Shown here in pieces: positions 13,672 to 63,946 of a DNA stretch of 64,000 nt. The stretch is taken from positions 1 to 64,000 of the forward strand of contig NIVC01001022.1 of the NCBI GenBank assembly GCA_002269645.1, written 5' to 3'. The position numbers were made by a program, and so were the translations under genes. The DNA comes from Macrostomum lignano (taxonomy: Eukaryota). The notes beneath the pieces are model-generated. The model was not told the DNA's origin, did not search any database, and was given only the letters and a program-made list of their open reading frames with translations. Position 1 is the first letter of the stretch, and each line of letters opens with the position of its first letter.

Positions 13672-13703
<32 letters not shown>

Positions 13704-13779
13704 GAACCAATCAATCAATCAATCAATCAACAAACGAACCAATCAATCAATCAATTAATTAATCAATCAATCAAGCAAG

Positions 13780-13810
<31 letters not shown>

Positions 13811-13850
13811 CCAACTAATCAGTAAATCAATCAATCAATCAATCAATCAG

Positions 13851-13899
<49 letters not shown>

Positions 13900-23300: not shown

Positions 23301-26300
23301 AGTAATGCCTCTCGCCGGTTGTGTGCCTATGTCGCTTAAAGTGCGCCAGGATGCACACAACCCCCCTGCCTCTAATTAAAAAAAATCACAAGGTGGGGTG
23401 GGGGCACAAAGCATTGGCATGTCCCCCCCATAGCTTTTACTGGGGGGACATGTCCCCCTGTCCCGCCGGTGGCGACGCGCCTGCTTAAACCAAAAAATTT
23501 CCTGTTCAAATTTAATCAAGGACGCAGCACTATAAAAGTTCCAACCACCCTTAATTAGGAAGTGAAGTTTACTCTCTACCCCAACATGGCACTTTGGGGC
23601 AGGTCCTGTACTCTCATCGTAATGCATCCATGGTCTCGCGGTCCTCAAATTGTTTTGCAGACCAGCTTGTGGTTTGTTAATCTAAACTGTGACAGGTTGC
23701 ACTTTAATTCTGGGTTGGAAATTTCTAGGACATACTTTGTTGGTTGAGTAATGAGTATGTACCATTTGAAGCTGTGTAGTAAAGCTGACTTTTTAGCTTT
23801 GCAAAGGTCTTTACTCTTGGTCTCCAGAGTCTCATTAAATTATGGTTCAAAACTAGCTTTCCGCGTTCTGATTGGGATTAAATCAAGTTTAAGGTCATTT
23901 AAAATCACGCTATACATCGTAAAAAATCAGCATAGGTTTTGGAGGTTGACTGGTCAGACTGGATCTATATCCATGCGACAAATGCGTGATGCTTTTTGTA
24001 TGACCTTGGGGGAATCCCCGACGGATAAACCCAGCCCTCCTTCACTACAAGTGCAAAACAAAACAAATTTACAGATACACTAGGCTATTTCTTTACTAAA
24101 TCAATAGCAGAGAACTCAGCTATACTCACTCGTTTGGCGTTGATGTTTGAACCAGCTTCAACTAGACAGTTGAGAATCTAAAATATTTTAAATTTAGTTA
24201 AATTATAACTGCTTGTGAACTTTAGTCCAATGTGAATCAACCAAAGTCTCTAAATAGCATTTTTATCACCTCAATCTGACGATTTTGCGTGGCATGATGC
24301 AGCGCAGTCGATCCATCATTGTCCTGACGCTCTAGCAGCAGCTGCTTGCTTTGCGAGCTGGCTGTATTGCCTGCTGAAAACGACGGTTTTTAGCAGATAA
24401 ACCATACATATTTTTTAAAGACAAAAGCAGCAGATCAAAAAGCCGCATTCTGAACGTCTTTCCTTACGCATTTTCATTGCATGGCGAAGAAGCTCCTTCA
24501 GAACAGTTAAGCAACCCTCGATGCAGGCAACCATGATTGGGTTGAGGCCGTTATTGTCAGCCACATTCAAGTTGGCTCCGTTTGAGAGCTTCAATTATAA
24601 AATAAATTCACACAATGCACGCAGTACTTATGCTTAACTCTTCAAAACGCTAGGTTGAGTACTATAAATTTGCTCACTAGAAGTTCGCACAGCTCTAAGC
24701 TGCCATTCCGAGACGGCTGGTGCAGCGCAGACACGCCATCCTTCTCCTGTTTGAGCACATCGGCACCCGACTGGATTAAAAGCTGCAGAATCAGTAAAGT
24801 TGATTTGAGTTAGTTGAATTAAGCTGAGAATGCACTATGGGTTGTTCGAGCGTAGATTTTATTGGAGAGTTAATTTCGAGTATGCTTGAGACGTATAAGA
24901 GAGAATTCTAGGTTTTAGGGTTATCAGGGTGTCGCAGGGCTGAGGGGGCGTCAGGGCTGAGGGTGTCAGGGTTGAGGGTTTCAGGGCTGAGAGGGTCTGG
25001 GCTGAGGGTGTCAGGGCTGAGGGTGTCAGGGCTGAGGGTGTCAGGGCTGAGGGTGTCAGGGCTGAAGGGTGTCAGGGCTGAAGGGTGTCAGGGCTGAAGG
25101 GTGTCAGAGACGGTAGTGTCAGGGTTGAAGGGTGTCAGTGCTGAGGGGTCTCATGGCTGAGGGTGTCAGGGCTGAAGGCTGTTAGTGTTGAGGGGTGCCA
25201 GGGCTGAAGGGTGTCAGGGCTGAGGGTGTCAGGGCTGAGGGTGTCAGGGCTGAAGGGTGTCAGGGCTGAAGGGTGTCAGGGCTGAAGGGTGTCAGAGACG
25301 GTAGTGTCAGGGTTGAAGGGTGTCAGTGCTGAGGGGTCTCATGGCTGAGGGTGTCAGGGCTGAAGGCTGTTAGTGTTGAGGGGTGCCAGGGCTGAAGGGT
25401 GTCAGGGCTGAGGGGTGTCATAGCTGAGGGTGTCAGAGCTGAAGGGTGTCAGGGCTGAGGATGTCATGGCTGAGGGTGTCAGGGCTGAAGGCTGTTAGTG
25501 TTGAGGGGTGCCAGGGCTGAAGGGTGTCAGGGCTGAGGGGTGTCATAGCTGAGGGTGTCAGAGCTGAAGGGTGTCAGGGCTGAGGATGTCATGGCTGAGG
25601 GTGTCAGGGCTGAGAGGGTCTAGGCTGTGGGTGTCATGGCTGAGGGTGTCAGGGCTGAAGGGTGTCAGGGCTGAGGGGTCTGGGCTGAAGGGTGTCAGGG
25701 CTGAGGATGTCATGGCTGAGGGTGTCAGGGCTGAGAGGGTCTGGGCTGTGGGTGTCATGGCTGAGGGTGTCAGGGCTGAGGGGGTCTGGGCTGAAGGGTG
25801 TCAGGGCTGATAGTGTCAGGGCTGAGGGTGTCAGGACTGAGGGTGTCAGCGCTGAGAGGTGTCAGGGCTGAGGGTGTCAGGGCTAAAAGGTGTCAGGGCT
25901 GAGGGGTGTCAGGTCTGAGGGGTGTCAGTGCTATGCGTCAGGGTTGAGGGTGTCAGGGCTGAGGGTGTCAGGGCTGAAGGATGTCAGGGCTGAGGGTGTC
26001 AGGACTGAGGGTGTCAGGACTGAGGGTGTCAGCGCTGAGGGTGTCAGGGTTGAGGGTGTCAGCGGTGAGAGGTGTCAGGGCTGAGGGTGTCAGGGCTGAG
26101 AGGTGTCAGGGCTGAGGGGTGTCAGGGCTACAGGTCATCAGCAACCCCTCACTCTGGCGATCTGCACGTGGCTCCTCCGGCACGCCACATGCAGGGCCGT
26201 CTGCCCCTTGTCGTCAGTAACGTCAATTTTGATGCCCTTCTGCCGCAGCAGCAGCTGCATCGCCTCCTCGACGTTGAAGGTTGCAGCCGCGTGGATCGGC

Positions 26301-26680
26301 CGGGTGCCCTCTTGGCCGCGAAGGTTCAGCGCAGCGCCTTTCCGAATGAGCAGCTGCAGAACCTCCAGACGGCGGTACTTGATGGCGTAGCTCAGGGCGC
26401 ATGTGAGCCGCTCGTCCAAGCTGTCGATCAGCGACGGCTTGGCGAGGACGGCCGCCCGGACGAACTGCGCGTCGCCTTCGCGAACCGCGTGGTGAAACTG
26501 CGGGGGGGAGAGGGGCGGCTTTGAGTTCAGAGAGGGTTTGAAATCCAACGGTGTGACTGCAGATTAGTCAGTTTGAAAGGGCCTTCAGACGCTGGATGAA
26601 AATCAAAGAAGACAGTCGCAAGCAGTCACGTCCATTCTGCTGGACAGCTGAGCGCTGTGCAGCAGCTCTGACTCTCTCAT
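10737..26680 (-). CDS. TRPA1: TRPA-family ankyrin-repeat cation channel, copy 2, 24 exons, about 1066 aa
   Basis: Hand-built exons, high to low: 26680-26630 (tentative first exon), 26497-26153, 24782-24678, 24588-24468, 24373-24270, 24177-24130, 22492-22368, 22284-22236, 20910-20629, 19858-19608, 19187-19076, 19003-18834, 17849-17765, 17640-17581, 17496-17348, 17021-16874, 15967-15923, 15824-15723, 15286-15120, 14558-14429, 13406-13233, 13118-13050, 12229-11991, 10806-10737. All junctions GT-AG, phases match, no internal stop. At least 12 ankyrin repeats (TALH/TPLH motifs), pre-S1 LLKHP...QEKWQKF, six hydrophobic segments, pore VGE, S6 MNLLIGIAVGDI. Confidence 0.9.
10893..11870. repeat. 32-bp minisatellite in the last intron of TRPA copy 2, about 30 units
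   Basis: Reverse complement of the 1957-3640 unit. Confidence 0.97.
12345..12935. repeat. 23-bp minisatellite (ggcgccaatcctacagtcctcat)
   Basis: About 25 near-identical units. Confidence 0.97.
13954..14240 (+). mobile_element. Family A SINE copy
   Basis: Colinear with 23022-23383 (gccgtagcccag...ggctcgattcc...gaagtgtacatgcctaacgata...cctctcgccggttgtg). Confidence 0.85.
15335..15700. repeat. Degenerate (ATCTC)n repeat
   Basis: Direct reading. Confidence 0.85.
16075..16750. repeat. Compound 21-24-bp minisatellite with a TTTGGCGCCC core
   Basis: Three successive unit types sharing the core. Confidence 0.95.
17090..17305. repeat. 12-bp (gagacaggcact)n followed by (GACA)n
   Basis: Direct reading. 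Confidence 0.95.
18065..18770. repeat. 31-bp minisatellite (actcaacttgagaatcatgagaagctacgct)
   Basis: About 22 units. Confidence 0.95.
19190..19440. repeat. 60-bp tandem repeat, about 4 units, abutting a TRPA acceptor site
   Basis: Near-identical 60-nt lines at 19201, 19261, 19321 and 19381. Confidence 0.95.
19885..20618. repeat. Near-perfect 13-bp minisatellite (cccagatcccgat), about 56 units
   Basis: Fills almost the whole intron 20628-19859. Confidence 0.98.
20975..21793. repeat. 15-bp minisatellite (gctggcgcccctggt and gctaaagcccctggt variants)
   Basis: About 54 units, two variants arranged in blocks. Confidence 0.98.
22794..23483. mobile_element. hAT-type MITE (same family as 47263-48218) carrying a SINE insertion
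   Basis: TIRs caggagcgtcgcca and tggcgacgcgcctg. Perfect 8-bp TSD cttaaacc at 22786-22793 and 23484-23491. Confidence 0.85.
23022..23383 (+). mobile_element. tRNA-derived SINE (family A), full length
   Basis: A box tagcccagcgg, B box ggctcgattcc, A-rich tail; TSD aatcacaaggt at 23007-23017 and 23384-23394. Confidence 0.85.
24925..26125. repeat. 15-17-bp G-rich minisatellite (agggctgagggtgtc)
   Basis: Fills TRPA intron 2; duplicated higher-order blocks visible. Confidence 0.95.
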
Positions 26681-27109: not shown

Positions 27110-27624
27110 ATGAGCAGCAGCAGGATCAGGCAGAACTTCCACGAAGAGAGCGAGGCCGCCTTGAACCGGCAGGTGAACATGGAGCTGTTCGCGTCGTACA
27201 CCTACCAGAGCATGAGCTTCCATTTCGCCAGGGATGACGTCGCCCTGCCGGGCATCGCCGCCAACTTCGCAAAAGAGTCCGTCGAGGAGCGCGGGCACGC
27301 CGAGAAGCTGATGAAGCTGATCAACCAGCGAGGCGGCACCATCGTGCTGGACAACATCAGCAAGCCGCAGAAGCAGGCCTGGGCTCCATGCTGGAAGCGA
27401 TGCAGGACGCCCTGCAGCTGGAGAGAGACGTCAACCAGAGCCTGCTGGACCTGCACAAGGTCGCATCGAAGCACGAGGATGCGCACCTCACCGACTATCT
27501 GGAGGGCGAGTTCCTCACCGAGCAGGTGGATGCCATCGAGAAGATCTCAGGTTACATCACGCAGCTCAAGAGGGTCGGCACTGGACTTGGAGAGTACATC
27601 TTCGACCACGAGGCTTTCAGTTGA
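27110..27624 (+). CDS. FTH1: Ferritin, H-type (ferroxidase centre intact), intronless; 1-nt frameshift at GGG 27381-27383
   Basis: [40 protein letters not shown]...RGG, then in the next frame [23 protein letters not shown]...EQVDAI...GLGEYIFD. Ferroxidase-equivalent Glu/Tyr/Glu-Glu/His/Glu/Gln residues present. Adding one G gives QAWGSMLE. Confidence 0.92.
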
Positions 27625-28001
27625 ACACAGGAGCTTCAGTGCGTCCTGCAGTTTAATTGACTCGCCTAAGCTGACTAAAGAGAAAAACTGATTTACTCAT
27701 AGAATTTGTCGGTATAAACATTAAGCGCTTTCATTGCAGTAAAATCATGTAGTCATTGCTACTCATATCTGTGATTCACGTTTTTGAACAATCGTTTCCT
27801 TGTGCCACATGAAAATCAATTACACTCACAGAACATATCGTATGCTATATTTATTCAGAATGTTCTCGAAGTAAAATATTTGCTATGGTTACCATAGGTT
27901 ATTGTTGATTCTAAACTGCAATAAAAGCAGCAAGTTGAAGAAAGAAAATTTGGCTATTAAAATGCTTGAAGTAGCATTGATGTGTTTTCGGATACTATTT
28001 T

Positions 28002-35234: not shown

Positions 35235-36915
35235 CTACAAAACGTAGGTACTCTTGGCCATGCTGGAGCTCTTCTGCTCCTGATCCGTGTGAGTCTGGTA
35301 GGCAATCTGGATATTGTCAGGTATCTTCAGCGCCTCCTTCAGCCTCTGCCCGATGTTCACGCACGAGTCGCGCTTATCGGCTGTCCGAGTCCACACAGAC
35401 AGTTTGTCCTGTTTGGCTCGGATTTGAACAATCGCTCCACAGACTTCGTCAGAATCTTCGTCGAAACCTTCGCCGATAAGCAGCAGCAGAGTCTCAATCC
35501 AGAAGCTGTCCATGCTGTGATTGCGCTTGTTCTTATCCAGGGTGATCAGCCAACGGCCGCCGTTCACGTTGCCGGGATCCTCCCACATGGGGTTGATGCC
35601 GTGCTTGAACAGGGAGTAGTCACAGCCAACTGGCAGCTTACTGGCTGGCTGAATGTGATTAAACAGAGCCCAGAAGTCTTCTACAAAACTGAAGCTGGTC
35701 ACTTCTTTTTGATTTTCGTTCCACGATTTCTGGCGATCGTTTTTGAAGAACCAGAGAGTCCAGCTGCGAGTTGATTAGGGGATTATGACTGTCAGAAACA
35801 TAATAAAATGGTTTCCAGGGCCATCTAAAGGGTTGTCAAGGATACTTAAACTGTTGTCAGGGGCATCAAAATAGTTGCTAACGTCACCAATACGGTTGCC
35901 AGGGACATCAAAATAGTTGCTAACGTCACCAATACGGTTGTCAGGGACATCAAAATGGTTGCTGAGGTCCCAAATACGGTTTTCAGGGCCATCAAAATGG
36001 TTGCTAAGGCAACTCATACGGTTGTCAGGGACATCAAAATAGCTACTTTAGCAACTATTTTTACTAAATATATGCTGCTGTTATTCGAAAAAATTACAAT
36101 TTTTTTACACCTTTTCTTAGCTAGAATATAAATTGCCTTGAAGAACTTAGAAAAGAAAAAGAAACCAGGAAAAGATGATAGGGAAACAGAAGCATTTTGC
36201 ATTGGTTTATCCGCCAGACAGACAATATTCAAGGCAGCAGGCATTAGCGCGCATACTTCACTCCCTCACCTCTGGATTCTAAGGCATGCAGAAGCCGCCT
36301 ACAAATCTGATTTGACCTTTTCATTCATTCAGGAATTCGGATTTGCACTTTTATTTTAGCCGGTAAAGAAGAGAGAAACAACGCTAAAATCTTTCTCTCT
36401 CTCTCTCTCTCTGCACCAGAAGGGGCCAAAGATGGTAAACCTGATATTTCTGCGAGTGAAGAAAAAACACACAACAGAATTGTCAAGATTGTTCGGTTGC
36501 TAAATTAATTAATTAATTTGATGCTAAATTAAAGTGGAAATCAAATAAAATAGCTAACATCTCTACCCTATCCTTTTCACTGCTGAGCCTCTTAGACCCA
36601 CAGAAGTTGCAGAAATCTGCAGACTCCATGCTTCTAATTTGACAACTAATAGAAGTTTTAAAATCCTTCCTAAGAATACTAACAATGCGGCCCAGGCTCG
36701 ATTCCAAGTGCAGTCACATTAATTTGGAGTTGATGAGACACACTATAATAGTTATTATATTACACTAACCGGTTATGAAGTGGGTGCTTCTGCGGGTTGC
36801 CAATAGCAACGGCAGATTCTTCGTCATTCATCTCAACTTCAGCAGCGGCGGCGGCTGCAGAAGATTCCATAGGCATTCGCGGTGCCAGTTCGGATAGTCC
36901 AGCTGCAGATGTCAT
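35235..36915 (-). CDS. EIF4E: Eukaryotic translation initiation factor 4E, class I, 224 aa, 2 coding exons
   Basis: Exons 36915-36770 and 35763-35235 (phase 2). KHPLHNR|WTLWFF, SWNEN, VEDFWALFNHI, PMWED, GGRW, FWIETLLLLIGE, LSVW. All eight conserved Trp present, with Trp at the 43 and 56 equivalents. Confidence 0.95.
35810..36045. repeat. 42-bp degenerate tandem repeat in the eIF4E intron
   Basis: gttgtcagggacatcaaaatagttgctaacgtcaccaatacg, about 5-6 units. Confidence 0.85.
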
Positions 36916-37409: not shown

Positions 37410-38165
37410 TGTATCCTTGAAATCTCCTGTCAAACCTTGTAAGCCTTGACATGTCAGTAATTCCCCCCCACAAGCTTTAACATATCAACTTCCCCCCTTG
37501 ACATCTCAGCAATGCCCCCAATAAGCCTTGGAAATCTAAAAATATCTGTCAACCTTCTAACCCTAGCCTAACCCTAACCCTAACCCTAGCCCTAACCCTA
37601 ACCTAACATTGAAATTTCTGTAATTCTCTTTAAGAGTAATTATAGCACTACTACAGCATTATAGCGATTCCCTGCAAGCCTCGACATCGTAGGGATTCCC
37701 AAATGAATCTCTTAACTTCGACATGAAGCTTCTTTTATTTTTTTACATTACGCTTTTTATCAGCGATCCCTCCCCTGAGGAGGCATCAAATAATGTAATA
37801 AAAAGTTTTCAATAAACTACATGTAGCTTCTGACTTTAGCCTTGAAATCTCATTTATACCCCCGTGAGCCTTGACATCTCAGCTATTCCCCCCGTAAGCC
37901 TTAACATGTCAGCGATGGCCGCCATAAACCTTGAAATCTAAAAAATCCCCTGTTATTCTGTTAACCTTGAAACCCGATAAAATATAACCCTCAACCCACA
38001 CCTGACCTAAACCTAACTTTAACCCAAGCTAAAGCCTTGAAATCTATAACGATTTCCACCAAGCTTTGACATCGTAGCAATTCCCAAATGAATCTTTTAA
38101 CTTCGACATGACTTTTATTTTATGTATACGTAGTGATACTTTTATTTTTTACATGACTTTTCTAC
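37410..38165. repeat. About 400-bp tandem duplication with internal sub-repeats and a short (TAACCC)n tract at 37555-37605
   Basis: ctacatgta...ccttgaaatctc...aatgaatct(c/t)ttaacttcgacatga occurs twice. Confidence 0.7.
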
Positions 38166-41100
38166 AGAGCTTCCCTGTGTGCGAAGTTCTGGGAAGAGTA
38201 CATTGCGACGTAGTAGGCCCTATTGCCCAGAAGAACAAGAGTGGGAACCGCTACATCTTGACGCTATGCGACTCGACGTCGAAGTACCCGTTCGCCTATC
38301 CGATGAGGAACCAGAAAGCCAAGACGGTCATCAAGATCCTGCAGGAGCGCTTGATCCCTGACTTTGGTGTACCATGCTGGATACACACTGATCAAGGAAC
38401 CAATTTCACTGGCTCAGCTTTCAAGAAGTTCTGCGACCTGTTTGGCATCCGGCATACTACGACAACACCGTACAATCCAGCTTCAAATGGGCAAGTCAAG
38501 AACCTCAACAAGCAGCTGAAGAGTGTCCTCACCTGCCTCCTCGAGCGCAACCATAACGACTGGGACACCTTTCTCCCAGCCTGTCTGATGGCTCTCCGCT
38601 CTAGTGTACACCCGGTGACAGGCTTCACGCCACACTACCTGGTGTTTGGTCGATATTTTCGACTACCAATCGACAACGCGATCAAGAAGCTGCCGGAGTA
38701 TGCCGATCTGCCTGACTATGTCAAGGACTTCCAGCGCCGATTAGACGAAGCGACTGAGCTAGCTAAAGAACGCCTGCATCTGCATCAGCAACTGCGCGAC
38801 GAGCACTATTCAAACCTGCCCGCCGCCAAGAAGCTCCAACCTGGTGACCTGGTTTTCCTCAACAACCCGGTGCTCGAACCGGATGAAGCGGCGAAGTTCC
38901 ATCGACCTCGCAAAGCGCTGTACGAGGTAGTCGAACCCAAGGGCGAGGTCGTCTACAAGATTCGCCGTAGAGTGCCAAACCCGCGGGCCAGACGCGACGA
39001 GCTAGTAGTCCATCGCCGGAATCTGCTGCTCGTACCTGATGCCGACTACCAGCTGACTTCGGATCCAGAAGTCGACAAGGCCAAGAAGCGCCGCAGGTCG
39101 ACTGATACCCCGGACGGTGCAGGACCCGCGACCCTGACACCGATCCCGGAGGACGATCCCGATGACGATGAGGATGACGATGACGCATGGCCGGCCTTCC
39201 GGTGGCACTTCCGGCCGTTGGCGATCCCGGATGTGCGGCCAGGAGGTGGACCGGTCACGACACCAGCGAACCAGGCAAGTGCATTTCGGCGTGAGCCACT
39301 GCCGTATGGTGATCGCCATGATGGTGTGCCTGGTTTGAATGCGTCTGCACCTGCTGCTTCTTTTTCACCTGTCAATGCGTCCCCTCTTCCTGAACCTTTT
39401 TCTGCGGTGCAGTCTCCTGCGCCACCTTCTTGCACCACTCAGGTGGAAGCGTCTCCCATACCAGTAGTGGTAGGTAGGCCAGTTAGGGATCGGAGGCCGC
39501 CCGAGAGGCTTCTGATTAGCGATCCTAGGGCTAAAACGTACGTTAGTCGCACCGCCCGCATGCGTGTGCACAAATCAAAACATTTCAGCGCAGCAATGCA
39601 CAAGCGCCCTTATCAGGCGAGCTCAAACTCATCCTCTGAGGCTGAGCAGGGCCGGCCTAGTCGGAGCCGCCAAAGGCAGGGAACCCCGTCCTCCCCGGAG
39701 GTCATGGGTATCCCGCGCCGACCCTTAGCTGCGCGGCAATTGGTGCAGCCTGACGGCCAGGAGCGCCCGGTGCGCCCACCCCGACGTGGGAGGGAGCGAA
39801 ATTGTCCGATGACTCCTCATCACCCGAGCCGCGACCACTCGCCACCGCACGCCGTCGCCCGAGCCCAGAACCTGCGAATGGCGCCTACCGAGGTCATCGG
39901 CGCCCAGGCGGAGTCCACCGCCAGACCAAGGAAGCCGTCGGTCGCAACACCGCCCGCGGCATCTCCGAGACAGCCCCGAGGTTGTTGACCTCACAGTTGA
40001 CTCGCCTCCGCCGGAAGCGGAAGTACGGCGCATGACCGCGGAGAGGCTCACGGCGGCTCTGGCCTATGCACAGCTCGAGCAGCAAGTGCTAAGGGGCCTG
40101 GCGGAGGTCCGCATCCAAATCCGTAATTCATTTGTAGGTGCCACTGCAACCAGCCCCGGCCCAAATGAGCAAGGTCAGCAGGTACGCCAGGGCGACCCGA
40201 CGGCGGCACCTATGAGCTTCGGAGGGCTCGAACACCAACCGCCACAAGTAGCGGCGCCGTCGCCCATGTCCCTGGCCGACGACCCACAAGTGCCAGCTGA
40301 TTGTTTCGCAACGGCCGAGCCCGCAGCTACCTGGAACAACCTGGCGGCCACCCAGCATCGCGAGCTCCCCCGGGCTCCGCCGCCCACGCCAGATAGGCCG
40401 CCGCAGCGAGCTGATGCCAGCACCCAGACCGAGGCATCAGAGCCACCACTGTCCTTGAGCGAGGCTAGGGCCGCTTTAATCTTCGCTGGTGCCAACCTGG
40501 CGCGCGCTGTCATTGTAAACGCGGCCAGACACGGCGATTGGCCCCCTGCCTTTCAGGGCCCGATCTGGAGCGAGCTCCGACACGCCACGGCGGAAGAGAG
40601 GTGCCGACTCCTAGGAGAAGCCGTCCGTCTAGCTGGCTCGGAGCTGGAGCACCCCGGCCAGCCATACGCCATGCACCTGGCGGCCATCTGCGTCGCCCAG
40701 CATCTTGGTGGCGGCGAGGAAGACTTACTGGCAGTCCTGAGCAATCCCCAGGCACGGTATTTTTGATGGCCTGGCCAGCCATAGGCATTAGGGCCTGATG
40801 TACTGAAATCAATAATACTGTTGCATGCATGTCATTTTGTTCAGGCCTTGTGGCCGAGCCCATGCCCGAGGGCACCGTTTCACTCCCCATTGGTAGCGCT
40901 AGTTGAACGCCATTTAATCAGAACCTTGCTATGCATACTCAAGCCCCTTTTATCCCGGTCGAGCGCACTGTCTAAGTGCTCAGAAATTGTGTGTGCCCGT
41001 ATGCTCAGGATTTGGTGTGACTCGAAACCCATTTTGGCGCCATTTCTCCTATGGGCCGGCGCCCCCACCTTCTATTTAGGCGTCATTTCTTCTGTGGGCC

Positions 41101-51339: not shown

Positions 51340-54300
51340 CTAAAATTGTTGATTATTATTGATTAGTTCAGCTGGATAGGCAGACCACGGGTTCTGAAAA
51401 CAAAACGGCAACAATAAAATCGTATTTATTAGCCGAAGAGACCTGCTATAATTTTAAATAATAAAAACTTACTTAATGCATTGCCGCGACTTATAGAGAC
51501 AAGAATGGTTTAGTTACGAAGCTGAAATTAATTAAGAGAAGAATAGCAAATGACTTTCACGGGGCACTGTGAAGGGGGTCGCAGATTCTTGCCATTCTCA
51601 AAACTCACGCTACCTGCCTAACCGCTACCAAATCAGCTTAACTAGGATTTACTTAGGCTCGCAACCTTAAAAAATTCATCCAAGAAATTCAGGTAAAAAT
51701 TTCAAAAGGACCCCCCCCCCTGTCTGCTTTCAACGCTTCAGCTTGATTTGCGAACTTAAAAAGGGAGTTATTTTTAGTGCAGAAAAAATTCTTTTTACCT
51801 GCCCAATAACTCGTTCGTCCTCGTCTTCCTCCATGTCATCCTCGTCCCCATCTTCGCCCTGTTAAATTAAAAGAAAGTTCAAGTAGTATTTCCAACCTTA
51901 ATTAGGACTAAAGTAAGACGAATCGCCAAGACTAAAGTTTATGATTTATCTAAACATGGTTCCTTAGTAATTTCGATACGCGTTTTAAAACCTCTCCCTG
52001 TCTGAACGGGATCAGGTTGAATCATCTCCCGAGATATTCTCGTAGATATTCTTTTAGCAAAGAGCGAGATTCCTATTCCTAACTGAACGTGCAGCAAAAA
52101 CAGCTGTCTATAGTCTATGGTTTGACTGTACTGTGTGGTACAGTTTAGTGTTGATTTGTAATTAATAAAGAATGCGTGTTAAGGAGTAAATGCGTATGTT
52201 GCAATATGCATGTAGAAACTTTATCTATTTGTCCCTCATCAGGTTCATAGGCGGAGTTTTAAATCTATCCGATAAGAGGGAGTGTCACAACATACATTTA
52301 TCTTGGCCTCTTTTTATTGAGACAACCCGTTATATAATCCTTGATTCTAGACGGCACAGTCAACAGAGTTGACCATAGACTATAGACTAGACTGCCAATT
52401 TAACATTTCGCTATGCAAAACAACACACATGCGCAACACCCGGCCGACCCGGCCAGCTGGCGAGGGGCCCAGCCAAGGTAAGTCGCAAAAATGCCCACCC
52501 GAAAAAATAGACATAGTACTAATTAGATGACGAGGCATTTGGCCCTTATAAGACAGTCATTTACTCCTGCCGTTTACTCAAAATTGCGTTAATTTTTGCT
52601 TTGGGTTTCTTTCGCAGGCAAGTCGCAGTTTTGGTAAAAAAAAATTAAGTAGCACGGTCAGTGTAAATCAGAGGGGGTTGCGCATGTATGCAAAACAATA
52701 TGCGACGGTTATGTCTATATTACTTTTAAGCCGCTATAATTTACTGCTGCAAGAAGTCTAAAAAAAGCATGTCAATAGAAAGCTATAATATTCAAGACAT
52801 GATGTACGCTCGCATTATTTGATAAATTATTTTTCCTTATTCTACTGTCGAAGATTGAGATTCAGGCTGACGCTTGACTGGAGTTTGAAGAGTCAGGAAT
52901 CAATAAGCCTATGATAAATATCAGAATAGATAGAAATCACGCAGTGTCAGATGCAGGATCAATCAAGCATTCAGTGCTTATCAATTTTTCATTGGGTTTC
53001 ATACATAGTCAAAGGAGCCAGCTTCATCCGTTGCAACTTATCAAGCAGCTTAATTCCCCACGGCCTGGCTTACTGAATTTCTCTCCTTTCCATCAAACGA
53101 CTCCGGAAAGCTCTCTATCTGTAGCTTAAATTCCATTTCCCAGCGAAACAGCACGTAAAAATAGAAGGAATCGATCGATGAAACATTTAAGAGACTATGA
53201 ACGTCATTCAAACTTCTATTTAATGCAGCAATTCTGCCAATATTTCATACCTTTAAAAAAGGATTCTATTTTAACTGGGGCAATTTAAGTACTGCAAACT
53301 AAAGCTGGCACTCACCTCGTCATCCTCGCTTTCGTACTGCAATGAAAAATATAAAGTTCTTATTAGTGCTTCATAATTAAAATACTTTTATACATAATTA
53401 CTTAAGACCCAAAATTCTCTAGTACATAGTACATTAGTACTTTAGTGCAGACTCGCAGAAAGTAAGACGTACTTCACTCCATTTCTAATATCAGTTCCAT
53501 AGCTGGATAAAACGCTTATATTCAACGTGTTTATTTGAGGTAGTCAAAAAATAATAAACAGTAATCGATGCAATTGAACTGGGTAAATGCAAGAGCATCA
53601 ACACAGACAAAACCACAGAGAAAAAAAAAACAGCAAATTAAAAACTGAAGTGCATCGTCTAATGACAAAATTAAAACACGGGTGCCTAAACAACTCAATT
53701 ATTTGTTGATCAAAATTATACACAAAACTGACAACCGAAAACTAATCAGCTAACGAACTATAATAAAAAACGGCCTTTAAATTACACTACTAAATTTATT
53801 AATCACGATAAAACTGAAGAGCTGATCAAGTAACAAGGAGCAAAGTGAACGATTACTTATTAGAGGTAGCGAATGGAATATCTACATTTAATAATGATGA
53901 TTTGCTAGATGAAATACATATAAACATAAAATTCAATTAACTATTCATACTATTAAACTAGTTAGTTTAGCTCATGATCATGCTACAGTCTCTTTGTAGT
54001 AGAACACAGTTCGACCACCGCTGCGACCGCGATCGCCGGCACTGCCGCTTCCACCTTCGCCACCATTGCGTCGCTCGGGCAGCCGGCCCAAGCTGGCATG
54101 CCTATCAAACTCAGCCGCTCCTTCGCCACCAACTGGATAGTCAAAATCGTCGTCGACATCATCATTATCCTCGTCGTTATACCCGACAGCGTCTGCTACC
54201 GTCGAATCAACTACCTGACCGCGTCGTCTACGGTGGTGACGCCTTCGACGCGACGAACCGTAGCAGTTAAGCGAGAAGCGCAACTCGCTAGACATCTCCG

Positions 54301-57300
54301 ACCACAGCGAGCGACCTTCGTCAGCGGCGGCTTCTGCATTTTTTCGCGTATTCCAAACAAACTCAACAACGGCTACAAAGACTGCTAGCAGCAGGCCGCA
54401 GACAAGCACTACAAAAATACCGCCAACGTTGTGCATGCCCAGCTCAGAGGCCGTTGTCTCCTGCGGATCTTTGCCTCGGCAAGTGCCAGTCTCTTTCCAC
54501 CATTTATTTTTAAGCGCCTGCAACTGCTGGTCGCGCTGTAGTTCGAGAATTTTTAGGGTCAGTTCGTCGCGAAGCTCCTCACGATTCGGCCTGATCCCGA
54601 GGCCGTAGCCTTTGCTATCGATTAGGCCGCCAATCTGCACTAAGTTGCACTGACGTTCAATGTGATATTCGATCATTGCCGATTCCATTAGGAAAGCATA
54701 TCCACCCCTTTTCACTCTTTCAATGGCTTCCATTGTGGTGGCCGTTTTCAAATGTTTCCGTGATCTCATATACTTGGCCATCCTAGCGTAGGTTTCTATA
54801 TGAGAAGTTTCGAAGAATGTCTCAGTCGATCCGCCAGCTAGAACACCATATTCTATAGCGGTCTGTTTCGATAGATCGTCTGCGCTCTCTATTGGCGATA
54901 CCATGCGTTCAACAGTAAGAAAAGCGGCCAGGTTAGCTGTATACGAGCTTATTATAATTAGCGTGAAAAACCACCAAATGCCAGCAACGATACGCGTGCT
55001 GACAGCTCGGGGATTTATATTCGAACCTTGTTGCATAAGCGTGCCAACTGTGAACCAGAAAGAGTTGGATAATGAGAAACTGTTCACTAAATAGCCGATA
55101 TCTTCGTCGCAAGGATGCGGCGAAACCCACTCGTAGGGCGAAAATCTTGCTAGAGCGTAGATCATTAGCGTCACCAACAAGTAAGCCGCAACAACGTACA
55201 ACCAGATTTCCACAGCTAACGGATTAAGAAAACTAAACAGACCGGGCTTTTCACCTTTCGGCTTCTTGAAAAGAATGCTAATGCCTAAATTCATAAACGG
55301 TTTAGTGAAATCGATCGCCTTCTCTCGTTCGTAAGTGATAGTAAAGGAGCCTAGGGCAATGTCAGCCCTGCCGTCAATAAGTTCGCGAACCATGCCGTTC
55401 CACTCGCAGTTACAACCGCTACTCTCGGTGGCTACTGACCCCGATGCCTGATCCATAGAAGCAGAAGACGATTCCAACTGCTTTGTTTGCTTATTTTTAT
55501 CGCAAGGCAGTTCAACACAGATTCCGTATTTGTCGTCAGGAGATCGATAGATAACCCAGTCCATGCCGGTTCGATTGGCTATTAGCTCCATCATGTCGAT
55601 GCAAAAGCCTTCCAGGTGTTGGCGGTGAAATTCTACATCTGGTCGAATGTGACCATTAATTAAATAGCGATTATGATATTCGCGCTTGACCCAGATAAAC
55701 GGCTGAGCAGCCAATGCTACAACGCGAAGCACTTTGTTCTTCAATGGATAGACAACTGCCAAATCGTAGGGCTCGCTAAAGACTTGCAATCCATGTCTGG
55801 GAGTCCAGTTGGCGAAACGTACCGGACCATTTGCTTTCAGATGATAAAGATCAAAGCTAACTGCCTGTCTAGACTTCTTGCTGTCGAATCTTAACCGGCC
55901 AGTAAGACCATTGCGCAAGTCCACCGAGTGCAGATAATTCATCAGACTACCACCAAACGGCGACCGCAACGCGTTGTTGTGCTCTCCAGCAGTGCCGTTG
56001 AATGACATCAAAGCATCGCAGCTCGGACCAAGCGGTGGCTTTATATGCCTACTGAGACTGAGACTGTCAAGAGCGCTGGCCAGCACCTGAACAGCATCGT
56101 AGATTAACGCCGCGCCAAGTGTCATTTGCCCGCCGCGTGTTAGCAAGACTCCATCCGGATTAACTAATCGTTGCTTGTTAGACCAATCGCGCATATCAGC
56201 CAACACGGAATTGTAGTGCGTCCAATTGCCAGGTACAACACGAAATGCAGTTAGATTAACGTGATTATGCCTGTAATCTTCAAGGTCAAGCGTCATAGCG
56301 TCCAAGTTAGCCAATATGTAATGATAGCGTCGGTTCATTAATCCGCGATTAGTAGCGGCGCGTAAAAAATGAGCAGTGGCTTCTAAACTGAGGTCTAGAA
56401 CCATGGTGCACCAGCCGGATGAGTCGATCTCAGAGAGTAGACTGTATACTTGACTAGCCACGTAGCGTTTAATCCGAAAATATAGCGCCCTGGTCTCGTG
56501 ACGATTGCGCAAAATGCTCTCTAGACGGAATAGACTTTCGTCATTCTCATAAACTATAAGAACATCCTGCCATTTAAAATAGTCGATAGCGGCTATAACA
56601 CTCAGACTGATATGATCAAGCGACGGATAGAGATTGAGCACAAAACCGTGGGCGGCATTTGAAGCGGATTCTTGAGCAGAAATCATCGGACGCAAATCCA
56701 ACTGCGGCGTTTGGGTAGCCGTCGCCATAGAAGCGAAATACTCGCTAGTTGCGCAGGCATGATGCGGACCGATCAGTGCCAGGGCGCCGCCTTCAAGCAT
56801 CCGGCAAACGGCTTGATTAGCTTGAAAACTGTCCTCGTCTTCGGCTAGCATAGTTACTATTGGCAACAGGTCGTGACGACAAAATATTGTCGAATCATTA
56901 TTCGAGTATCGTCGGCTCATACTAGCCAAAGCGTAATGGAGCGCGTTACGTTTGCGTAATTCTTCAATGCCAGAGCCGAATATGGCTCCGAATCTTAGCT
57001 TAGTCTTGTGCACGGGACAGGAGGCCGCTGCTGCAGCAGTTGCAGTCAAGTGCGCAGCCACAACCAACGCCAGCAGAGTGGGCGATAGCCAATTCATTTT
57101 ACGTTATTTATTAAGCTGAGCTTTTTTGATCAACAAGTTAGTTATCCTTAGCTACAGATTGACAGTTGGTTGACTTTGAAACAGGGCTTCGTTCTTGCTG
57201 TATGGTCTGATATTTTTATTTTAAAAAAAGCACACAAACAGAAAGCCGCAGATATATTAATAACAATAATAATAATAATAATGAATTCGGCTTAGCCGAG

Positions 57301-60300
57301 AGGAGAGGCAACTTAGCAGTCGGATAGGCCACACCGGGAAGAGCCGAGGCTGATATAAGTGAAAGCGGTGGAAAAAGAGAAGAGAGGAGAGGAGGAGAGA
57401 GGAGGACAGTGGAGAGAAGGAGGGTCGAGGTGGCAGCAAGGGACGGTGACTGGCTGGAAAGTTCAGGAGGAGGCCGAGCTAAGGGGAATCTCCAAAAAGA
57501 GAGCGAGTGAAATAAAAATACGGTGTGAGGTAGGTGCAGGGGAAACCGAGGGGATTATACAGTATATTGCGGGCAGGAGGGGGGAAATGAGCTAAACGAG
57601 AAATGGGAGGACAGATGGGCGGGAAATCCGAGCCAGAGAGGGTCGAAAACACCCTGGGATATTTCAGAGAAAAGCAAAAGAGGAATCGGAGGATGTTGAG
57701 ACTTGGCAACGTAGAGAGGATTTGGGGAGTTGTAAAAAGGAAACAGGGAGAAACCGAGGAGGCAGTATAATACGGTAGATCAGTGCCAATTCTGCAGGAT
57801 ATTCTCATGAGGACAATTTACGACAAGGGAGAGAATTAGCTGCAGAAAGAATGAAGCGAGTCGGTGAAGAGGGTTGGCTGGTTTTGGGATAGAGTTCACA
57901 AGCTGGCGTAGTTTGTATTGAGAAACTGCAATATTGGCTGTGTTGAATAAACATAATTATGGATTTTTTCTCTATTTGACAGTTATATCCCAAATTGCCT
58001 TAAGGGATACCACACCTTTAAAATACTGTAAGTAGGTACTGTAGGATACTGTAAGAAGTGCTGTAGGATACTGTAAGAAGTGCTGTAGGATACTGTAAGA
58101 AGCACTGTAGGATACCTGTAAGAAGTGCTGTAGGATATTGTAAGAAGTGCTGTAGGATATTGTAGGAAGTGCTGTAGGATGCTGTAAGAAGTGCTGTAGG
58201 ATACTGTAAGAAGTGCTGTAGGATACTGTAAGAAGTGCTGTAGGATACTGTAAGAAGCACTGTAGGATACTGTAAGAAGTGCTGTAGGCTACTGTAAGAA
58301 GTACTGTAGGCTACTGTAAGAAGTACTGTAGGATACTGTAATAAGAGGTGCTGTAGGATATTTTAGGAAGTGCTGTAGGATACTGTAATATGAGGTGCTG
58401 TAGGATATTTTAGGAAGTGCTGTAGGATACTGTAAGAAGTGCTGTAGGATACTGTAAGAAGTGCTGTAGGATACTGTAAGAAGTGCTGTAGGATACTGTA
58501 AGAAGTGCTGTAGGATATTGTAAGAAGTGCTGTAGGATACTGTAAGAAGTGCTGTAGGATACTGTAAGAAGTGCTGTAGGATACTGTAAGAAGTACTGTA
58601 GGATACTGTAAGAAGTGCTGTAGGATACTGTAAGAAGTACTGTAGGATACTGTAAGAAGTGCTGTAGGATACTGTAAGAAGTGCTGTAGGATACTATAAG
58701 AAGTGCTGTAGGATACTGTAAGAAGTGCTGTAGGATACTGTAAGAAGTGCTGTAGGATACTGTAAGAAGTGCTGTAGGATACTGTAAGAAGTGCTGTAGG
58801 ATACTGTAAGAAGTGCTGTAGGATACTGTAAGAAGTGCTGTAGGATACTGTGTTGTAGGAAGTTTTGTAGACTAGTATATAGATTTTAAGAGCAGCTTAA
58901 GGTTGGGATTCTTAGCAGATTTACCAGCTGGACTCAAACCCAGATTAAATATTTTTACGTCTAAAAGTTACTCTTTGGGGCATTTAAATCCATTTGCTTA
59001 AGCTTCTTAACTAAAAACCTCTTTACTAAGGATCAGTTAAATTCTAAGTAAAAAAATCTGTAGCACTTACGTCTTCATCTTCGAGTCCTTCGCCAGTGAA
59101 GTACAGGACCGCACGGGGTATGACTCTTTCGCGAAGAAAGTGCCCGATTTCGAAGTCAGATTGAAGCAGGTCTTCGATCTCTTCGTCCTGTAATTTTATT
59201 GAGTATATAATTGAGCATTTTAAATTGTAATCCCGATCGAGTGCTTAGCTGTCACCCAAAGTGCAGCTTGAATATGAAACAAATACTGCACCATTATCTA
59301 CCACACGCTAATTTAAAAGACATTCACTGTACCAATGAAAAGTGCAAGCAACCTAACCTAGTATTATAAAAATCATATATCAATGCCCCTTAGGAAACAG
59401 GGTTTTTACCTCACGATTCTGCAAAAAATAATAATGTTAAAGCTTTATGAATTTAATGTAATTACCTAGAATTACATTAGCACTGAACTGCCAAATGGAA
59501 GCTGTTGTTGAAGGACAAATGACCCTATCTAACACCCGGAACTGACTGACCATATCTAACACCCCGAACAGAATGAACCTATCTAACACCCCAAACAGAC
59601 TGACTCTATCTAACACTCCAAACAGACTGACCCTATCTAACACCCCAAACAGACTGACCCTATCTAACATCCCGAACAGACTGACCTATCTAACACCTCA
59701 AACAGACTGACTCTATCTAACACCTCAGACTAACTCTATCTAACACCCCAAAAAGACTGACCCTATGTAACACTCCAAACAGACTGACCCTATCTAACAC
59801 CTCAAACAGACTGACCCTATATAACATCTCAAACAGACTGACCCTATGTAACACCTCAAACAGACTGACCCTATCTAACACCCCAAACAGACTGACCCTA
59901 TCTAACATCCCAAACAGACTGACCCATCTAACACCTCAAACAGACTGACCCTATCTAGAATATTAAACCAGCTAGAAATTCTAACAATTTGATTAATGAC
60001 GAAAAAAGAGTAAACATCAGAACCCATATCACTGTCTTATTTTAATTATCGAAATGGAAAAAAAGTTAATCTGATTTAATCTACCTATCTATCCAAGAAC
60101 TGCCGGTACAAACTTATAGGAAATTAATTATATTCAAAGTCCCGGCCTTGATCGCATTAGCACTCGCACATCTTGACAGGAAATATCCCTAGCTCCCATT
60201 ATTACACATAGGAAATCAATCAATATTGTATACAATCTGCAGAAACTGCAGAAACTGAATTTATTTATCTACATCTATCTATATGTCATTAGAATATATC

Positions 60301-63300
60301 AACTATACTTAAATTCAATCATCATAGCCAACATCAATCAATCTATCTATCTATCAATCAAGAAAATTTATCGAGAAGGGAGACAGACATAATGAGAGAC
60401 ACAGCGGACCCAAACAAGGATAGGAGCTCTACAAAACTGACTTATATACGTAGATATGATTATTACACGCTAGCCAGTATATTAGCAGGGTACTCGTAGC
60501 GTGCAGGCATGGCCTCAGGGGGGTACGCGTGAAAGAGCGAGACGGAGGCACTCGAACAAACGAGATAAGAAACAGAATCAGCCAGGGAGCACAGCATCAA
60601 CACATCTGGCTATGATAGGAAACAAGAAATGCAAGAGTAAAACAAGAATCAACACGATTAGGTAGAATCAGTGCTTGTTTATATGAGAGAGGAGGGTAAG
60701 AAAACAGAAGGGGGGCAGAGGAGAGGAAGAGAGGAGAGACAAAGAGGGAGAGCGAGGAGAGAATAGAGAACCATACAGTAGAGTTAGAGGAGAACCAAGA
60801 GAAGAGAGAGGAGAACCACAGAGGAGAGAGAGAACCACAGAGGAGAGAGAACCAAGAGGAGAGAGAGGAGAACCAAGAGGAGAGAGAGAACCACAGAGGA
60901 GAGAGAACCAAGAGGAGAGAGAGGAGAACCAAGAGGAGAGAGGAGAACCACAGAGGAGAGAGGAGAACGACAGAGGAGAGAGAGGAGAACCACACGGGAG
61001 AGAGGAGAACCACAGAGGAGAGAGGAGAACGACAGAGGAGAGAGGAGAACCACACGGGAGAGAGGAGAACCACAGAGGAGAGAGGAGAACCACAGAGGAG
61101 AGAGGAGAACGACAGAGGAGAGAGGAGAACCACACGGGAGAGAGGAGAACCACAGAGGAGAGAGGAGAACCACAGAGGAGAGAGGAGAACGACAGAGGAG
61201 AGAGGAGAACGACAGAGGAGAGAGAGGAGAACCACACGGGAGAGAGGAGAACCACAGAGGAGAGAGGAGAACCACAGAGGAGAGAGAACCAAGAGGAGAG
61301 AGAGGAGAACCACAGAGGAGAGAGGAGAACGACAGAGGAGAGAGAGGAGAACCACACGGGAGAGAGGAGAACCACAGAGGAGAGAGGAGAACCACAGAGG
61401 AGAGAGGAGAACCACAGAGGAGAGAGGAGAACCACAGAGGAGAGAGGAGAACGACAGAGGAGAGAGGAGAACGACAGAGGAGAGAGAGGAGAACCACACG
61501 GGAGAGAGGAGAACCACAGAGGAGAGAGGAGAACCACAGAGGAGAGAGAACCACAGAGGAGAGAGGAGAACCACAGAGGAGAGGAGAACCACAGAGGAGA
61601 TAGAACTACACAGTAAACACAGGAGAGAAAAGATAGCATTTTCAGGCCCAAGGCATCCAAAAAGGCATCAAAGTGTGTCCACTTAGATAAGATTAGGACC
61701 CATATAATCTACAGCACGATATCAGATATCACCAAGTCTTCGATAACAAACAGGAGAAACACGCACAAATAATTTCCATTCCAGGCGTGAATTTCCAGAA
61801 GTCCTTGCGGCCCAATATATAGCCCAGCAGCATGCAGAGGCAACAGGGCATATAAAACACTCAAGCAAGCGCACACAGTACCTTCCGACCTCGATGATGA
61901 GAGAAAGGAAGGAAGAACCGCGTTAATTGCATTAGAATGCAGCTCAGCTCAGGCCACCCCTAGCCCCCCTCGCCTCAGTCCAACAAGAAAAAGCCGACGA
62001 GGCTGAGAGCGTTAAATTGAATTAGTGAGGCCGAGTGCATCCTATTAGACAAGAGTTCGAAGCGAAAAAATGTGCGAGTCCATCAATACTTTGGTGGAAA
62101 ATTGAAGTTTACCTGCTTAGCCTAGCCTACTCAGATTACTTCCTGCTAGAGAAACTTCTCAGAGAAAGACTATTGACCCAAAGCTGTTTAAGTGTGTCCA
62201 TGTGTCTTAACTAATTAACTAAGCCAGTTTTAACGGTTCAGGGGTCACTGCTCAGTGAAATCGGCTTGCCCAAGACTCTGGGTCCGTGCTAGATTTAATG
62301 TAGAGTCTCTGAATCATGTTTGAAGTGCCCCAACTAGCCTACTGAGTTAGTAGAAAGTACCTCAATTAAACAAGAAAAGAAAATTTATAAGTCTAAAAAA
62401 ATTATAAACAGAAAAAAATTAACAAGCTAATAAGCACTTACATCTGATCCCAACTCGTCAATAGCTGAAACAGTCAAACGGGATAAGGTAAGAAAAACAA
62501 AAATAATTAATTAATTTACAAAATCTTAGTTGCAAACACGCGATGCCCATGAGACAATTATTGCGACAGGATAAAATAGCATACAAAAAGCTTATATTGC
62601 TACTAACAACCGATTTTGAGTAGAAATATACGAATTTTACTTCTAGTTTTACTCTCAACAATTTAATTCTTTCGCAAATCACGATAATTACATCCCAAAC
62701 TTTCTCATTAAAGTCAGTCCATCAAATCAACAAGTCAATCTATCAAATCAACAAGTCAATCTATCAAATCAACAAGTCAATCTATCAAATCAACAAGTCA
62801 ATCTATCAGAAATCAACAAGTCAATCTATCAGAAATCAACAAGTCAATCTATCAGAAATCAACAAGTCAATCTATCAGAAATCAACAAGTCAATCTATTA
62901 GAAATCAACAAGTCAATCCATCAGAAATCAACAAGTCAATCTATCAAAAATCAACAAGTCAATCTATCAGAAATCAACAAGTCAATCTATCAGAAATCAA
63001 CAAGTCAATCTATCAAATCAACAAGTCAATCTATCAGAAATCAACAAGTCAATCTATCAGAAATCAACAAGTCAATCTATCAGAAATCAACAAGTCAATC
63101 TATCAGAAATCAACAAGTCAATCTATCAGAAATCAACAAGTCAATCTATCAGAAATCAACAAGTCAATCTATCAGAAATCAACAAGTCAATCTATCAGAA
63201 ATCAACAAGTCAATCTATCAGAAATCAACAAGTCAATCTATCAGAAATCAACAAGTCAATCTATCAGAAATCAACAAGTCAATCTATCAGAAATCAACAA

Positions 63301-63946
63301 GTCAATCTATCAGAAATCAACAAGTCAATCTATCAGAAATCAACAAGTCAATCTATCAAATCAACAAGTCAATCTATCAGAAATCAACAAGTCAATCTAT
63401 TAAACCTACAATCTAATAGTAAAACAAGCCAATAAGCCACTCACTCTGCGTTGGCGGATTGAAGAAGTTGAAGAACGAATCAGCCTCGACAGTCTTCGTG
63501 ACAGTTCGCTTCTGCCCGCTGCCCCGGTGCTTCTGCACTTTGCGCACCACTTTAACCGTGGCATTTTTGCCAGCCTTCCACAGGATCTCGCAGCCGCTGC
63601 AGCGAACAATCTCGGGGCCCTCATAGTCCCACGGGTGCTCAGGATCCGGCACCATTCTCAAATAATAATGCTTAGTAAGCATACTATTAGAGAAGTATTC
63701 GTTTGGCGAGAAATGAAACTCCAATACGAAACCGCTCTGCTCTCCGCTGAACGTGATCACCTTGATGTCGGTCAGGTGGCGCAGTATCGGCTCGTCTTGA
63801 TCGCGAATCATCTGGCTCAGCAGGTCGACGTTCTTGAGCGCCGTCAGCCAGAACCCCGGCACGCCTGGGCCTGCGGGCTGCTGCAGCTGCTGCTCCGACT
63901 GAGGTGCGTCACCGGCCTGACCTCCGGCTCCGTTGGTCAGAGCCGT
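51340..63946 (-). CDS. NAP1L1: Nucleosome assembly protein 1 (NAP1/NAP1L family), 3' portion; 5' exons lie beyond the window end
   Basis: Exons 63946-63445, 62464-62442 (23 nt), 59187-59071, 53336-53316 (21 nt), 51858-51799 and a tentative last exon 51393-51340. Motifs GVPGFWLTALKN, DEPILRHLTDI, FVLEFHFSPNEYFSNSMLTKHY, SFFNFFNPP, DFEIGHFLRERVIPRAVLYFTGE and an acidic tail. Phases consistent. Confidence 0.9.
53978..57097 (-). CDS. GRIK: Ionotropic glutamate receptor, kainate-type (GRIK-like), single-exon ORF of 1039 aa, nested in a NAP1 intron
   Basis: Signal peptide, ATD, S1 (EGFCIDMM...WNGMVRELI...[25 protein letters not shown]), M2 LMQQG, M3 [15 protein letters not shown], S2 ([25 protein letters not shown]), M4 after [9 protein letters not shown], C-terminus KETVA. 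Uninterrupted 3120-nt ORF. Confidence 0.95.
   Translation of the reverse strand: [1039 protein letters not shown]
58025..58850. repeat. 22-bp minisatellite (ctgtaggatactgtaagaagtg)
   Basis: NAP1 intron, upstream of the iGluR start. Confidence 0.96.
59520..59958. repeat. About 27-bp minisatellite (cccaaacagactgaccctatctaacac)
   Basis: Direct reading. Confidence 0.93.
60780..61600. repeat. 20-22-bp GA-rich minisatellite (agaggagaaccacagaggag)
   Basis: Direct reading. Confidence 0.95.
62720..63402. repeat. 21-23-bp minisatellite (aatcaacaagtcaatctatcaga)
   Basis: Starts about 40 nt inside the NAP1 donor at 63444. Confidence 0.96.

Follow-up and report, generated by a model that had tools for sequence, protein, structure and literature searches.

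An intact, intronless gene for a kainate-type glutamate receptor nested on the same strand within an intron of a NAP1 gene in Macrostomum lignano

A 64,000-nucleotide stretch of the genome of the flatworm Macrostomum lignano (assembly GCA_002269645.1, contig NIVC01001022.1, positions 1 to 64,000; hereafter the window) was analyzed for a gene encoding a kainate-type ionotropic glutamate receptor (iGluR) that lies inside an intron of a NAP1 gene. Both genes are on the minus strand, the receptor is intact, and the splicing pattern of the host is conserved. The receptor is sense-nested in a phase-0 intron that is conserved and situated close to the 3' end of NAP1, and we consider it fairly probable that it is functional and anciently intronless and that it forms its own transcription unit. 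The features of the locus on which the analysis is based were as follows.

63445..63946, minus strand: NAP1 exon a, encoding TALTNG...FFNFFNPPTQ plus 1 nt; the main NAP-domain exon within the window
62442..62464, minus strand: NAP1 microexon b, 23 nt, encoding ..TIDELGSD
59071..59187, minus strand: NAP1 exon c, encoding DEEIEDLLQSDFEIGHFLRERVIPRAVLYFTGEGLEDED
53337..59070, minus strand: host intron with the receptor gene, 5,734 nt, GT..AG, phase 0
53978..57097, minus strand: single-exon coding sequence (CDS) of the kainate-type iGluR, 1039 aa, with signal peptide MNWLSPTLLALVVAAHLTATAAAAA and C-terminus ..KETVA
53316..53336, minus strand: NAP1 microexon d, 21 nt, encoding YESEDDE
51799..51858, minus strand: NAP1 exon e, encoding GEDGDEDDMEEDEDERVIGQ

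The five NAP1 exons, all on the minus strand, were located by tblastn with NAP1 proteins, exon a matching NAP1L1 at 3e-55. The AG/GT borders of exons a to e were canonical (for exons c and d, acceptors ending in cag and the donors gtaagt and gtgagt), and the joined exons gave an open frame of 241 codons ending ..GEGLEDED YESEDDE GEDGDEDDMEEDEDERVIGQ; splicing of c, d, and e yields the acidic tail ..EDEDYESEDDEGEDGDEDDMEEDEDE... These coordinates and the in-frame GT-AG chain agree with the initial annotation of this DNA, which had placed the receptor between NAP1 exons 59187-59071 and 53336-53316 on the minus strand. The NAP1 product of the window is itself partial, as the 5' part of the gene runs past the window end, and the NAP domain (PF00956) is present in its homologues. 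After exon e, the sequence gtaaaa is either a donor or is read through to a TGA near 51730, and a terminal 3' piece of NAP1 corresponding to the end of the orthologue cDNA (..HRH and stop) was not found in the window by short-word BLAST.

The exon chain was compared with an orthologue cDNA from a related Macrostomum (L002, Logan SRR28338165; 1,390 nt), which encodes an 85%-identical NAP1 and contains exons a-b-c-d-e contiguously. Across the position of the receptor, its junctions join ...GLEDED to YEDEDDE and YEDEDDE to GDEGDEDDMEED..., the sequence after microexon d reading GDEGDEDD... Because c, d, and e are joined in one spliced transcript in this cDNA, the exons on either side of the receptor would likewise belong to one mRNA, as the homologues indicate, and the acidic exons downstream of the receptor can be attributed to NAP1 rather than to another gene, as the initial annotation had assumed. 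Counterparts of the 21-nt microexon d encode YEDEDDE in the orthologue cDNA and FDEDDED in an M. lignano NAP1 paralog, BOX15_Mlig001367g3 (L003). The latter matches the host in exon c, in the 21-nt microexon, and in exon layout; the intron that separates exon c from the microexon in this paralog measures 1,174 nt and is free of the receptor ("empty site").

The host is the divergent member of this pair, being 64-65% identical to the other NAP1 paralog, and the C-terminal ends are ...ERVIGQ in the host, ...INQHRH in the host orthologue, and ..ECKQQ in the other, canonical paralog. Since a canonical ..ECKQQ paralog exists elsewhere, the earlier description of the host as a housekeeping gene is weakened, and judging from these sequences the host is not clearly one. 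Contigs of the orthologue of the canonical paralog, from the same run series as L002, begin with ..TGCGAAGACTCAATTTATTGCATG, the 3' portion of the spliced leader (SL) published for M. lignano, indicating that they are cDNA from a close relative. The SL portion occupies positions 1-15 of L007 (Logan SRR28338164) and 1-24 of L008 (SRR28338163), both from a related Macrostomum; in SL-containing reads of M. lignano, the sequence to be trimmed off is CGGTCTCTTACTGCGAAGACTCAATTTATTGCATG. These contigs show that the canonical paralog's orthologue is SL trans-spliced and that the leader is conserved between the species.

The receptor open reading frame (ORF) at 57097..53978 on the minus strand is uninterrupted over 3,120 nt including the stop codon and encodes 1039 aa; the whole CDS is this one ORF, and the gene has no introns. 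All Pfam matches exceeded the curated cut-offs and followed the order ANF_receptor (PF01094, residues 60-421), Lig_chan-Glu_bd (PF10613, 548-614), and Lig_chan (PF00060, 629-902). Among solved structures, the receptor matched GluK2 at E=9e-186 and AMPA (GluA) receptors at about 1e-138, and in a search of 1.8 billion protein representatives its nearest named relatives were all "kainate 2/5-like". By match scores and nearest named relatives, the receptor is thus predicted to be of kainate type rather than AMPA or NMDA type. The complete, single-exon, same-strand iGluR that the initial annotation had nested in a NAP1 intron was therefore recovered with an intact ORF and kainate-type domains.

Alignment to GluK2 (5kuf_A) showed that the glutamate-contact residues are kept, namely the Arg of TITYEREK (S1), GGST (in GGSTETFF), and LMES (in LMESAMIE). 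The pore Q/R site is Q (MQQG), the gate SYTANLAAF is kept, and the S2 disulfide cysteines are retained. The domain order, the glutamate-binding Arg, Ser-Thr, and Glu, the pore Q, and SYTANLAAF are common to the receptor and to kainate-type iGluRs (GluK1-3 and invertebrate kainate-like receptors), with an overall identity of about 38-40%. Unlike these, the receptor of the window carries about 30 aa of inserted low-complexity sequence in S1, its C-terminal tail is long and acidic/basic, and its gene has no introns. Its C-terminus, ETVA, is of the PDZ-ligand type of GluK1. The first homologue search of the receptor used an E-value cut-off of 1e-50, which could hide short fragments, and a 48%-identical relative (P0132, Logan ERR14224704) was left out of the comparisons because its origin and molecule type were not established. 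The entry A0A1I8I3N7 in UniRef covers 91% of the receptor ORF at 99% identity.

The intronless state was examined against relatives in other phyla. In Haliotis, the gene for the relative extends over 27 kb and has 8 or more coding exons; in Plutella, the corresponding figures are 36 kb and 14 or more. M. lignano genes have 4.9 introns on average (PMC5730564); against this background, a single-exon receptor stands out. The premise that animal iGluR genes are intron-rich thus holds in the two relatives. The only close M. lignano paralog found, in searches that cannot list all iGluR genes of the species, was BOX15_Mlig020012g1/g2, which is 59% identical and consists of one 3,030-nt exon. It maps to a different scaffold, where the 10 kb on either side of it contain no NAP1 exons. 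The intron-containing parent that the initial annotation proposed to look for was not among the matches; a close relative was found, but it is itself intronless.

Comparison of the two receptors gave a pS of 0.78, indicating saturated synonymous sites, and a pN of 0.25 overall; in the ligand-binding/channel part, pN was 0.11 versus a pS of 0.79. Relative to its paralog, the receptor appears to be under purifying selection. Because the only close paralog is also single-exon, lies elsewhere, and is saturated at synonymous sites, the loss of introns, by old retroposition or otherwise, would have taken place in the common ancestor of both receptors, long before the nesting and independently of it. 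The receptor would have moved into the host intron afterwards, in a distinct event. DNA similarity between the flanks of the receptor and those of the paralog was absent beyond the CDS, a result that is uninformative on how the gene moved.

Marks of recent retroposition were also sought. No A-run followed the AATAAA at 53800 or the AATAAA at 53535, no direct repeats of at least 12 nt were found bracketing the receptor ORF, and inspection by eye of the sequence just upstream of the ATG gave no convincing match to an SL remnant of the kind that retro-copying of an SL-bearing mRNA should leave. The missing poly(A) relic and target-site duplication argue that the receptor is not a recent retrocopy, and on these sequence features a recent retrocopy or pseudogene is unlikely. 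The term "retrocopy" in the initial annotation does not hold in the recent sense, given also the intronless nearest paralog with its saturated synonymous sites.

The region between exon c and the receptor start codon contains the following features.

57098..57805, minus strand: putative long 5' leader, 708 nt of unique, ATG-free sequence
57250..57900, minus strand: pyrimidine-rich tract, 71% purine on the plus strand, overlapping the ATG-free leader
57787..57845, minus strand: two sites that fit the SL-acceptor motif [T/C]TNCAG (G at 57840 and 57792), where the ATG-free stretch ends on its upstream side
58023..58851, no strand assigned: tandem array with 37 copies of a 22-bp unit, situated in the host intron and upstream of the receptor

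The stretch 57098..57805 is pyrimidine-rich, is not a tandem array, and contains no ATG. ATG is the sole trinucleotide of the 64 that is absent from it, whereas shuffles led to an expectation of about 6.3. The probability of finding no ATG in 708 nt was 0.0005 in dinucleotide-preserving shuffles and 0.0002-0.0016 in local block shuffles. Other long ATG-free runs nearby are tandem arrays, in which the absence of ATG is trivial. The depletion suggests selection against upstream AUGs and hence a long leader in a mature mRNA that would begin near 57.8 kb. The purine/pyrimidine skew of 57250-57900 noted earlier was confirmed (71% purine on the plus strand). If the leader starts near 57.8 kb, much of this tract would be 5' untranslated region (UTR) and not promoter, and the tract is either 5' UTR or outron. 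The proposals that the tract serves as a promoter and that the receptor is captured at the weak AG at 57153-57152 both lose ground to the 708 ATG-free nucleotides, which point to a long leader from about 57.8 kb; judged by the sequence, the AG at 57153 is unlikely to be the receptor 5' end. Capture by cis-splicing from NAP1, also proposed, is disfavored by an in-frame TAA 9 nt upstream of the receptor ATG and by an ORF that opens with its own signal peptide. The TAA excludes translation reading in from NAP1.

The SL-acceptor motif of M. lignano is [T/C]TNCAG (PMC8629364). The two matches at the edge of the ATG-free stretch (57840 and 57792) are candidate 5' ends, about 1-2 being expected there by chance. 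In the 22-bp array, the unit on the minus strand holds CCTACAG and CTTACAG, both of which fit the motif, giving about 74 acceptor-like sites. A search of the window against Rfam gave no matches, and the SL RNA gene and the SL sequence are absent from the window. As a separate observation, the 7 nt following the acceptor-like ..tcctgcag (57785-57791, minus strand) are AATTGGC, identical to the 7 nt following the start codon (57088-57094, minus strand). A spliced leader ending in ATG and joined at 57792 would read ATG AAT TGG CAC TGA; the repetition may be a coincidence or a relic.

Downstream of the receptor, three candidate poly(A) signals were found.

53530..53892, minus strand: candidate poly(A) signals of the receptor, ATTAAA at 53892..53887, AATAAA at 53800..53795, and AATAAA at 53535..53530

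All three follow the receptor stop codon and precede NAP1 microexon d. Neither AATAAA nor ATTAAA occurs between exon c and 57220, so that a short NAP1 isoform would have no obvious polyadenylation site upstream of the receptor. It is plausible that the receptor poly(A) site truncates NAP1, creating a conflict between the two outputs; the phenomenon is already known (PMC13309782, PMC3192792).

Taken as its own transcription unit, the receptor would be transcribed into an mRNA whose 5' end lies about 0.7 kb before the ATG, near 57.8 kb, at either its own transcription start or an SL acceptor, and this mRNA would carry a long AUG-free leader. The transcript would end at its own AATAAA (53800 or 53535), before microexon d, and NAP1 would normally splice out the entire receptor unit together with the intron. 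The intronless state would have been inherited from an older intronless ancestor common to Mlig020012, not made by the nesting.

Several points weigh against this reading. The expression, the 5' end, and the poly(A) site of the receptor are all inferred from sequence, and the ATG depletion is a post hoc observation. Matches to [T/C]TNCAG number 4 in the 925 nt upstream, which is about chance level. When assemblies and transcriptomes were queried for the exact receptor protein, no record was returned, and the receptor's cluster contains no protein at least 90% identical from the NCBI set (BOX15, transcript-based). The missing BOX15 protein could reflect low receptor expression or absence from that annotation. 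The adjacency of the receptor and microexon d is known from this assembly alone. A search for transcripts of the 5' UTR with an N-terminal 212-aa query returned nothing; it also missed the known 99% match and is uninformative.

Other explanations were weighed against the same evidence. The receptor might have no promoter of its own and depend on the host, being released from the NAP1 intron by SL trans-splicing and its own poly(A) cleavage in competition with cis-splicing of c to d. The two genes share a strand, the receptor is preceded by a long pyrimidine-rich stretch and by [T/C]TNCAG motifs, the 22-bp array holds dozens of acceptor-like motifs, repeat-rich spacers are typical of M. lignano operons, and the orthologue of the other NAP1 paralog is SL trans-spliced. 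However, the acceptor motif matches are at chance level, no SL-bearing receptor transcript was obtained, and one would expect different expression patterns for a neuronal receptor and for a histone chaperone. Moreover, genes in M. lignano operons follow a polyadenylated gene at about 100 bp (repeat-adjusted), whereas no signal lies between c and 57220. On balance, we regard dependence on the host as unlikely. Its more specific form, an "operon inside an intron" in which each NAP1 pre-mRNA yields either the acidic-tailed NAP1 mRNA or the receptor mRNA in a mutually exclusive manner, with the acceptor near 57.8 kb or in the 22-bp array, is decidedly improbable.

A recent processed copy that landed in the NAP1 intron, possibly silent or decaying, would account for the lack of introns in a receptor whose counterparts in other phyla have at least 8-14 coding exons, and introns are a common landing site. 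Set against this, neither a poly(A) tract nor flanking direct repeats were found, the 1039 codons are intact with the functional residues kept, and the nearest genomic relative is only 59% identical and itself intronless, with no intron-bearing parent in sight; the chance of such a copy is very small. An assembly mis-join in a repetitive region, which would mean that the receptor is not truly between NAP1 exons, has to be considered because the host introns are full of tandem arrays and because M. lignano is a hidden polyploid whose genome is rich in repeats (PMC10468722). However, the ORF flanks at 57098-58022 and 53337-53977 are unique sequence, the five NAP1 exons are all in correct order and frame, and in an independent, slightly different copy (P0128), exons a and c immediately precede the ORF and share its strand. 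We therefore give a mis-join very little weight. Least credible of all is a true NAP1-iGluR fusion made by cis-splicing of the exon c donor into the ORF. Such a model is present in public protein sets (UPI0007A3255E, P0128), but it enters the ORF at ..K/LRFGAIF and thereby loses the signal peptide that a membrane receptor needs, it omits conserved NAP1 sequence together with microexon b, and it adds small gaps within the ORF; the orthologue cDNA, in contrast, splices exon c to microexon d. A functional, anciently intronless receptor with its own transcription unit accordingly remains the explanation that we favor.

The locus can be compared with known nested genes. At the cholinergic locus, VAChT/unc-17 lies in the first intron of ChAT/cha-1 on the same strand, and this neuronal guest is intronless in vertebrates. 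The cholinergic host and guest are functionally linked and share 5' exons or a promoter. At the receptor locus, in contrast, the host encodes a histone chaperone, and the guest occupies an intron close to the 3' end instead of the first one. Genes nested in introns are common, and same-strand nesting of single-exon genes is known; figures quoted in PMC3192792 put about 37% of human nested genes on the host strand and about 41% as single-exon. As in metazoan host/nested pairs in general, a whole protein-coding gene lies in an intron of another, and the receptor gene is single-exon and probably tissue-specific; it differs in being a large guest (3.1 kb CDS) rather than a small gene. Furthermore, M. 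lignano uses SL trans-splicing and operons, and a same-strand nested gene therefore has an expression route there that mammals lack.

In mouse H13/Mcts2, an intronless sense guest lies in a host intron, and its activity is tied to intronic polyadenylation and truncated host transcripts (PMC13309782). The idea of mutually exclusive outputs therefore corresponds to a known mechanism. Mcts2 can be recognised as a retrogene of recent origin, and its promoter is an imprinted CpG island, whereas the receptor lacks retrocopy hallmarks, and the receptor locus has no poly(A) signal upstream of the receptor (between exon c and 57220). SL-resolved operons of M. lignano (PMC8629364) resemble the receptor locus in their same-strand neighbours, repeat-rich spacing, and acceptor-like motifs. 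Unlike in these operons, the upstream gene NAP1 is unfinished, with at least two coding exons downstream of the receptor, and no poly(A) signal lies between NAP1 exon c and the receptor leader. The nested receptor is thus a new example of an ordinary kind of nested gene and not a new kind of system.

Public gene models of the locus are chimeric or shortened (P0128, UPI0007A3255E; P0129, A0A1I8HV33; P0001, A0A1I8I3N7). In UPI0007A3255E, a 1222-aa UniParc model in the receptor's 90% cluster, NAP1 exons a and c are strung onto the receptor ORF. It differs from the window by few substitutions, suggesting another allele or copy with the same upstream adjacency. Because the signal peptide is lost, microexon b and part of exon a are skipped, and gaps are invented in the ORF, this model is very likely a gene-prediction artefact. 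A NAP1 fragment was clustered with the receptor owing to the chimera. The main value of the present analysis lies in annotation: A0A1I8I3N7 is truncated and UPI0007A3255E is chimeric, whereas the locus shows two separate genes, one for the complete 1039-aa receptor, signal peptide included, and one for NAP1, which has two microexons. The analysis also indicates that one lineage of the Macrostomum kainate-type receptors lost all its introns long ago, and it provides a filled/empty site pair, with a 5.7 kb intron in the window and a 1.17 kb intron in the paralog. If the receptor were expressed from host pre-mRNA by SL trans-splicing, competition among cis-splicing, trans-splicing, and polyadenylation could conveniently be studied at this locus in a transgenic flatworm.

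The other NAP1 introns are filled by tandem arrays at 59520-59957 (27-bp), 60786-61600 (20-bp, 41 copies), and 62724-63400 (23-bp, 30 copies), which yield long spurious ORFs in several frames. The statement that every other large gene in the window is intron-rich was found to be correct for NAP1 and for a TRPA-like gene, both of which are multi-exon, but not for eIF4E. The complete eIF4E domain lies in one ORF at 35774..35238 on the minus strand (Pfam IF4E 4-158/158, E=2e-59), and its coding region is largely uninterrupted. Ankyrin-repeat exons and an Ion_trans piece on the minus strand (13173-13442, 19607-20955, and 26141-26563) probably belong to one multi-exon TRPA-like channel gene at about 13-26.5 kb, with GC-rich tandem arrays between the pieces.

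An ORF of 193 aa at 27110-27688 on the plus strand is ferritin-like; its Pfam Ferritin match covers only the first half of the domain, and the second half may have diverged, be shifted in frame, or be encoded by a separate exon. A GC-rich (62%) ORF at 38108-39988 on the plus strand, continuing to 40766, contains a retroviral-type integrase core (rve, E=3e-16) and is a fragment of a long terminal repeat (LTR) retroelement. A large inverted duplication relates about 1-3700 to about 10700-13900. Mirrored within it are Ion_trans-like segments at 692-943 (plus strand) and 13173-13442 (minus strand), a QSIN repeat at 2-746 and 13400-13898, and a PSDSFRS repeat at 1832-3708 (plus strand) and 10740-11911 (minus strand).

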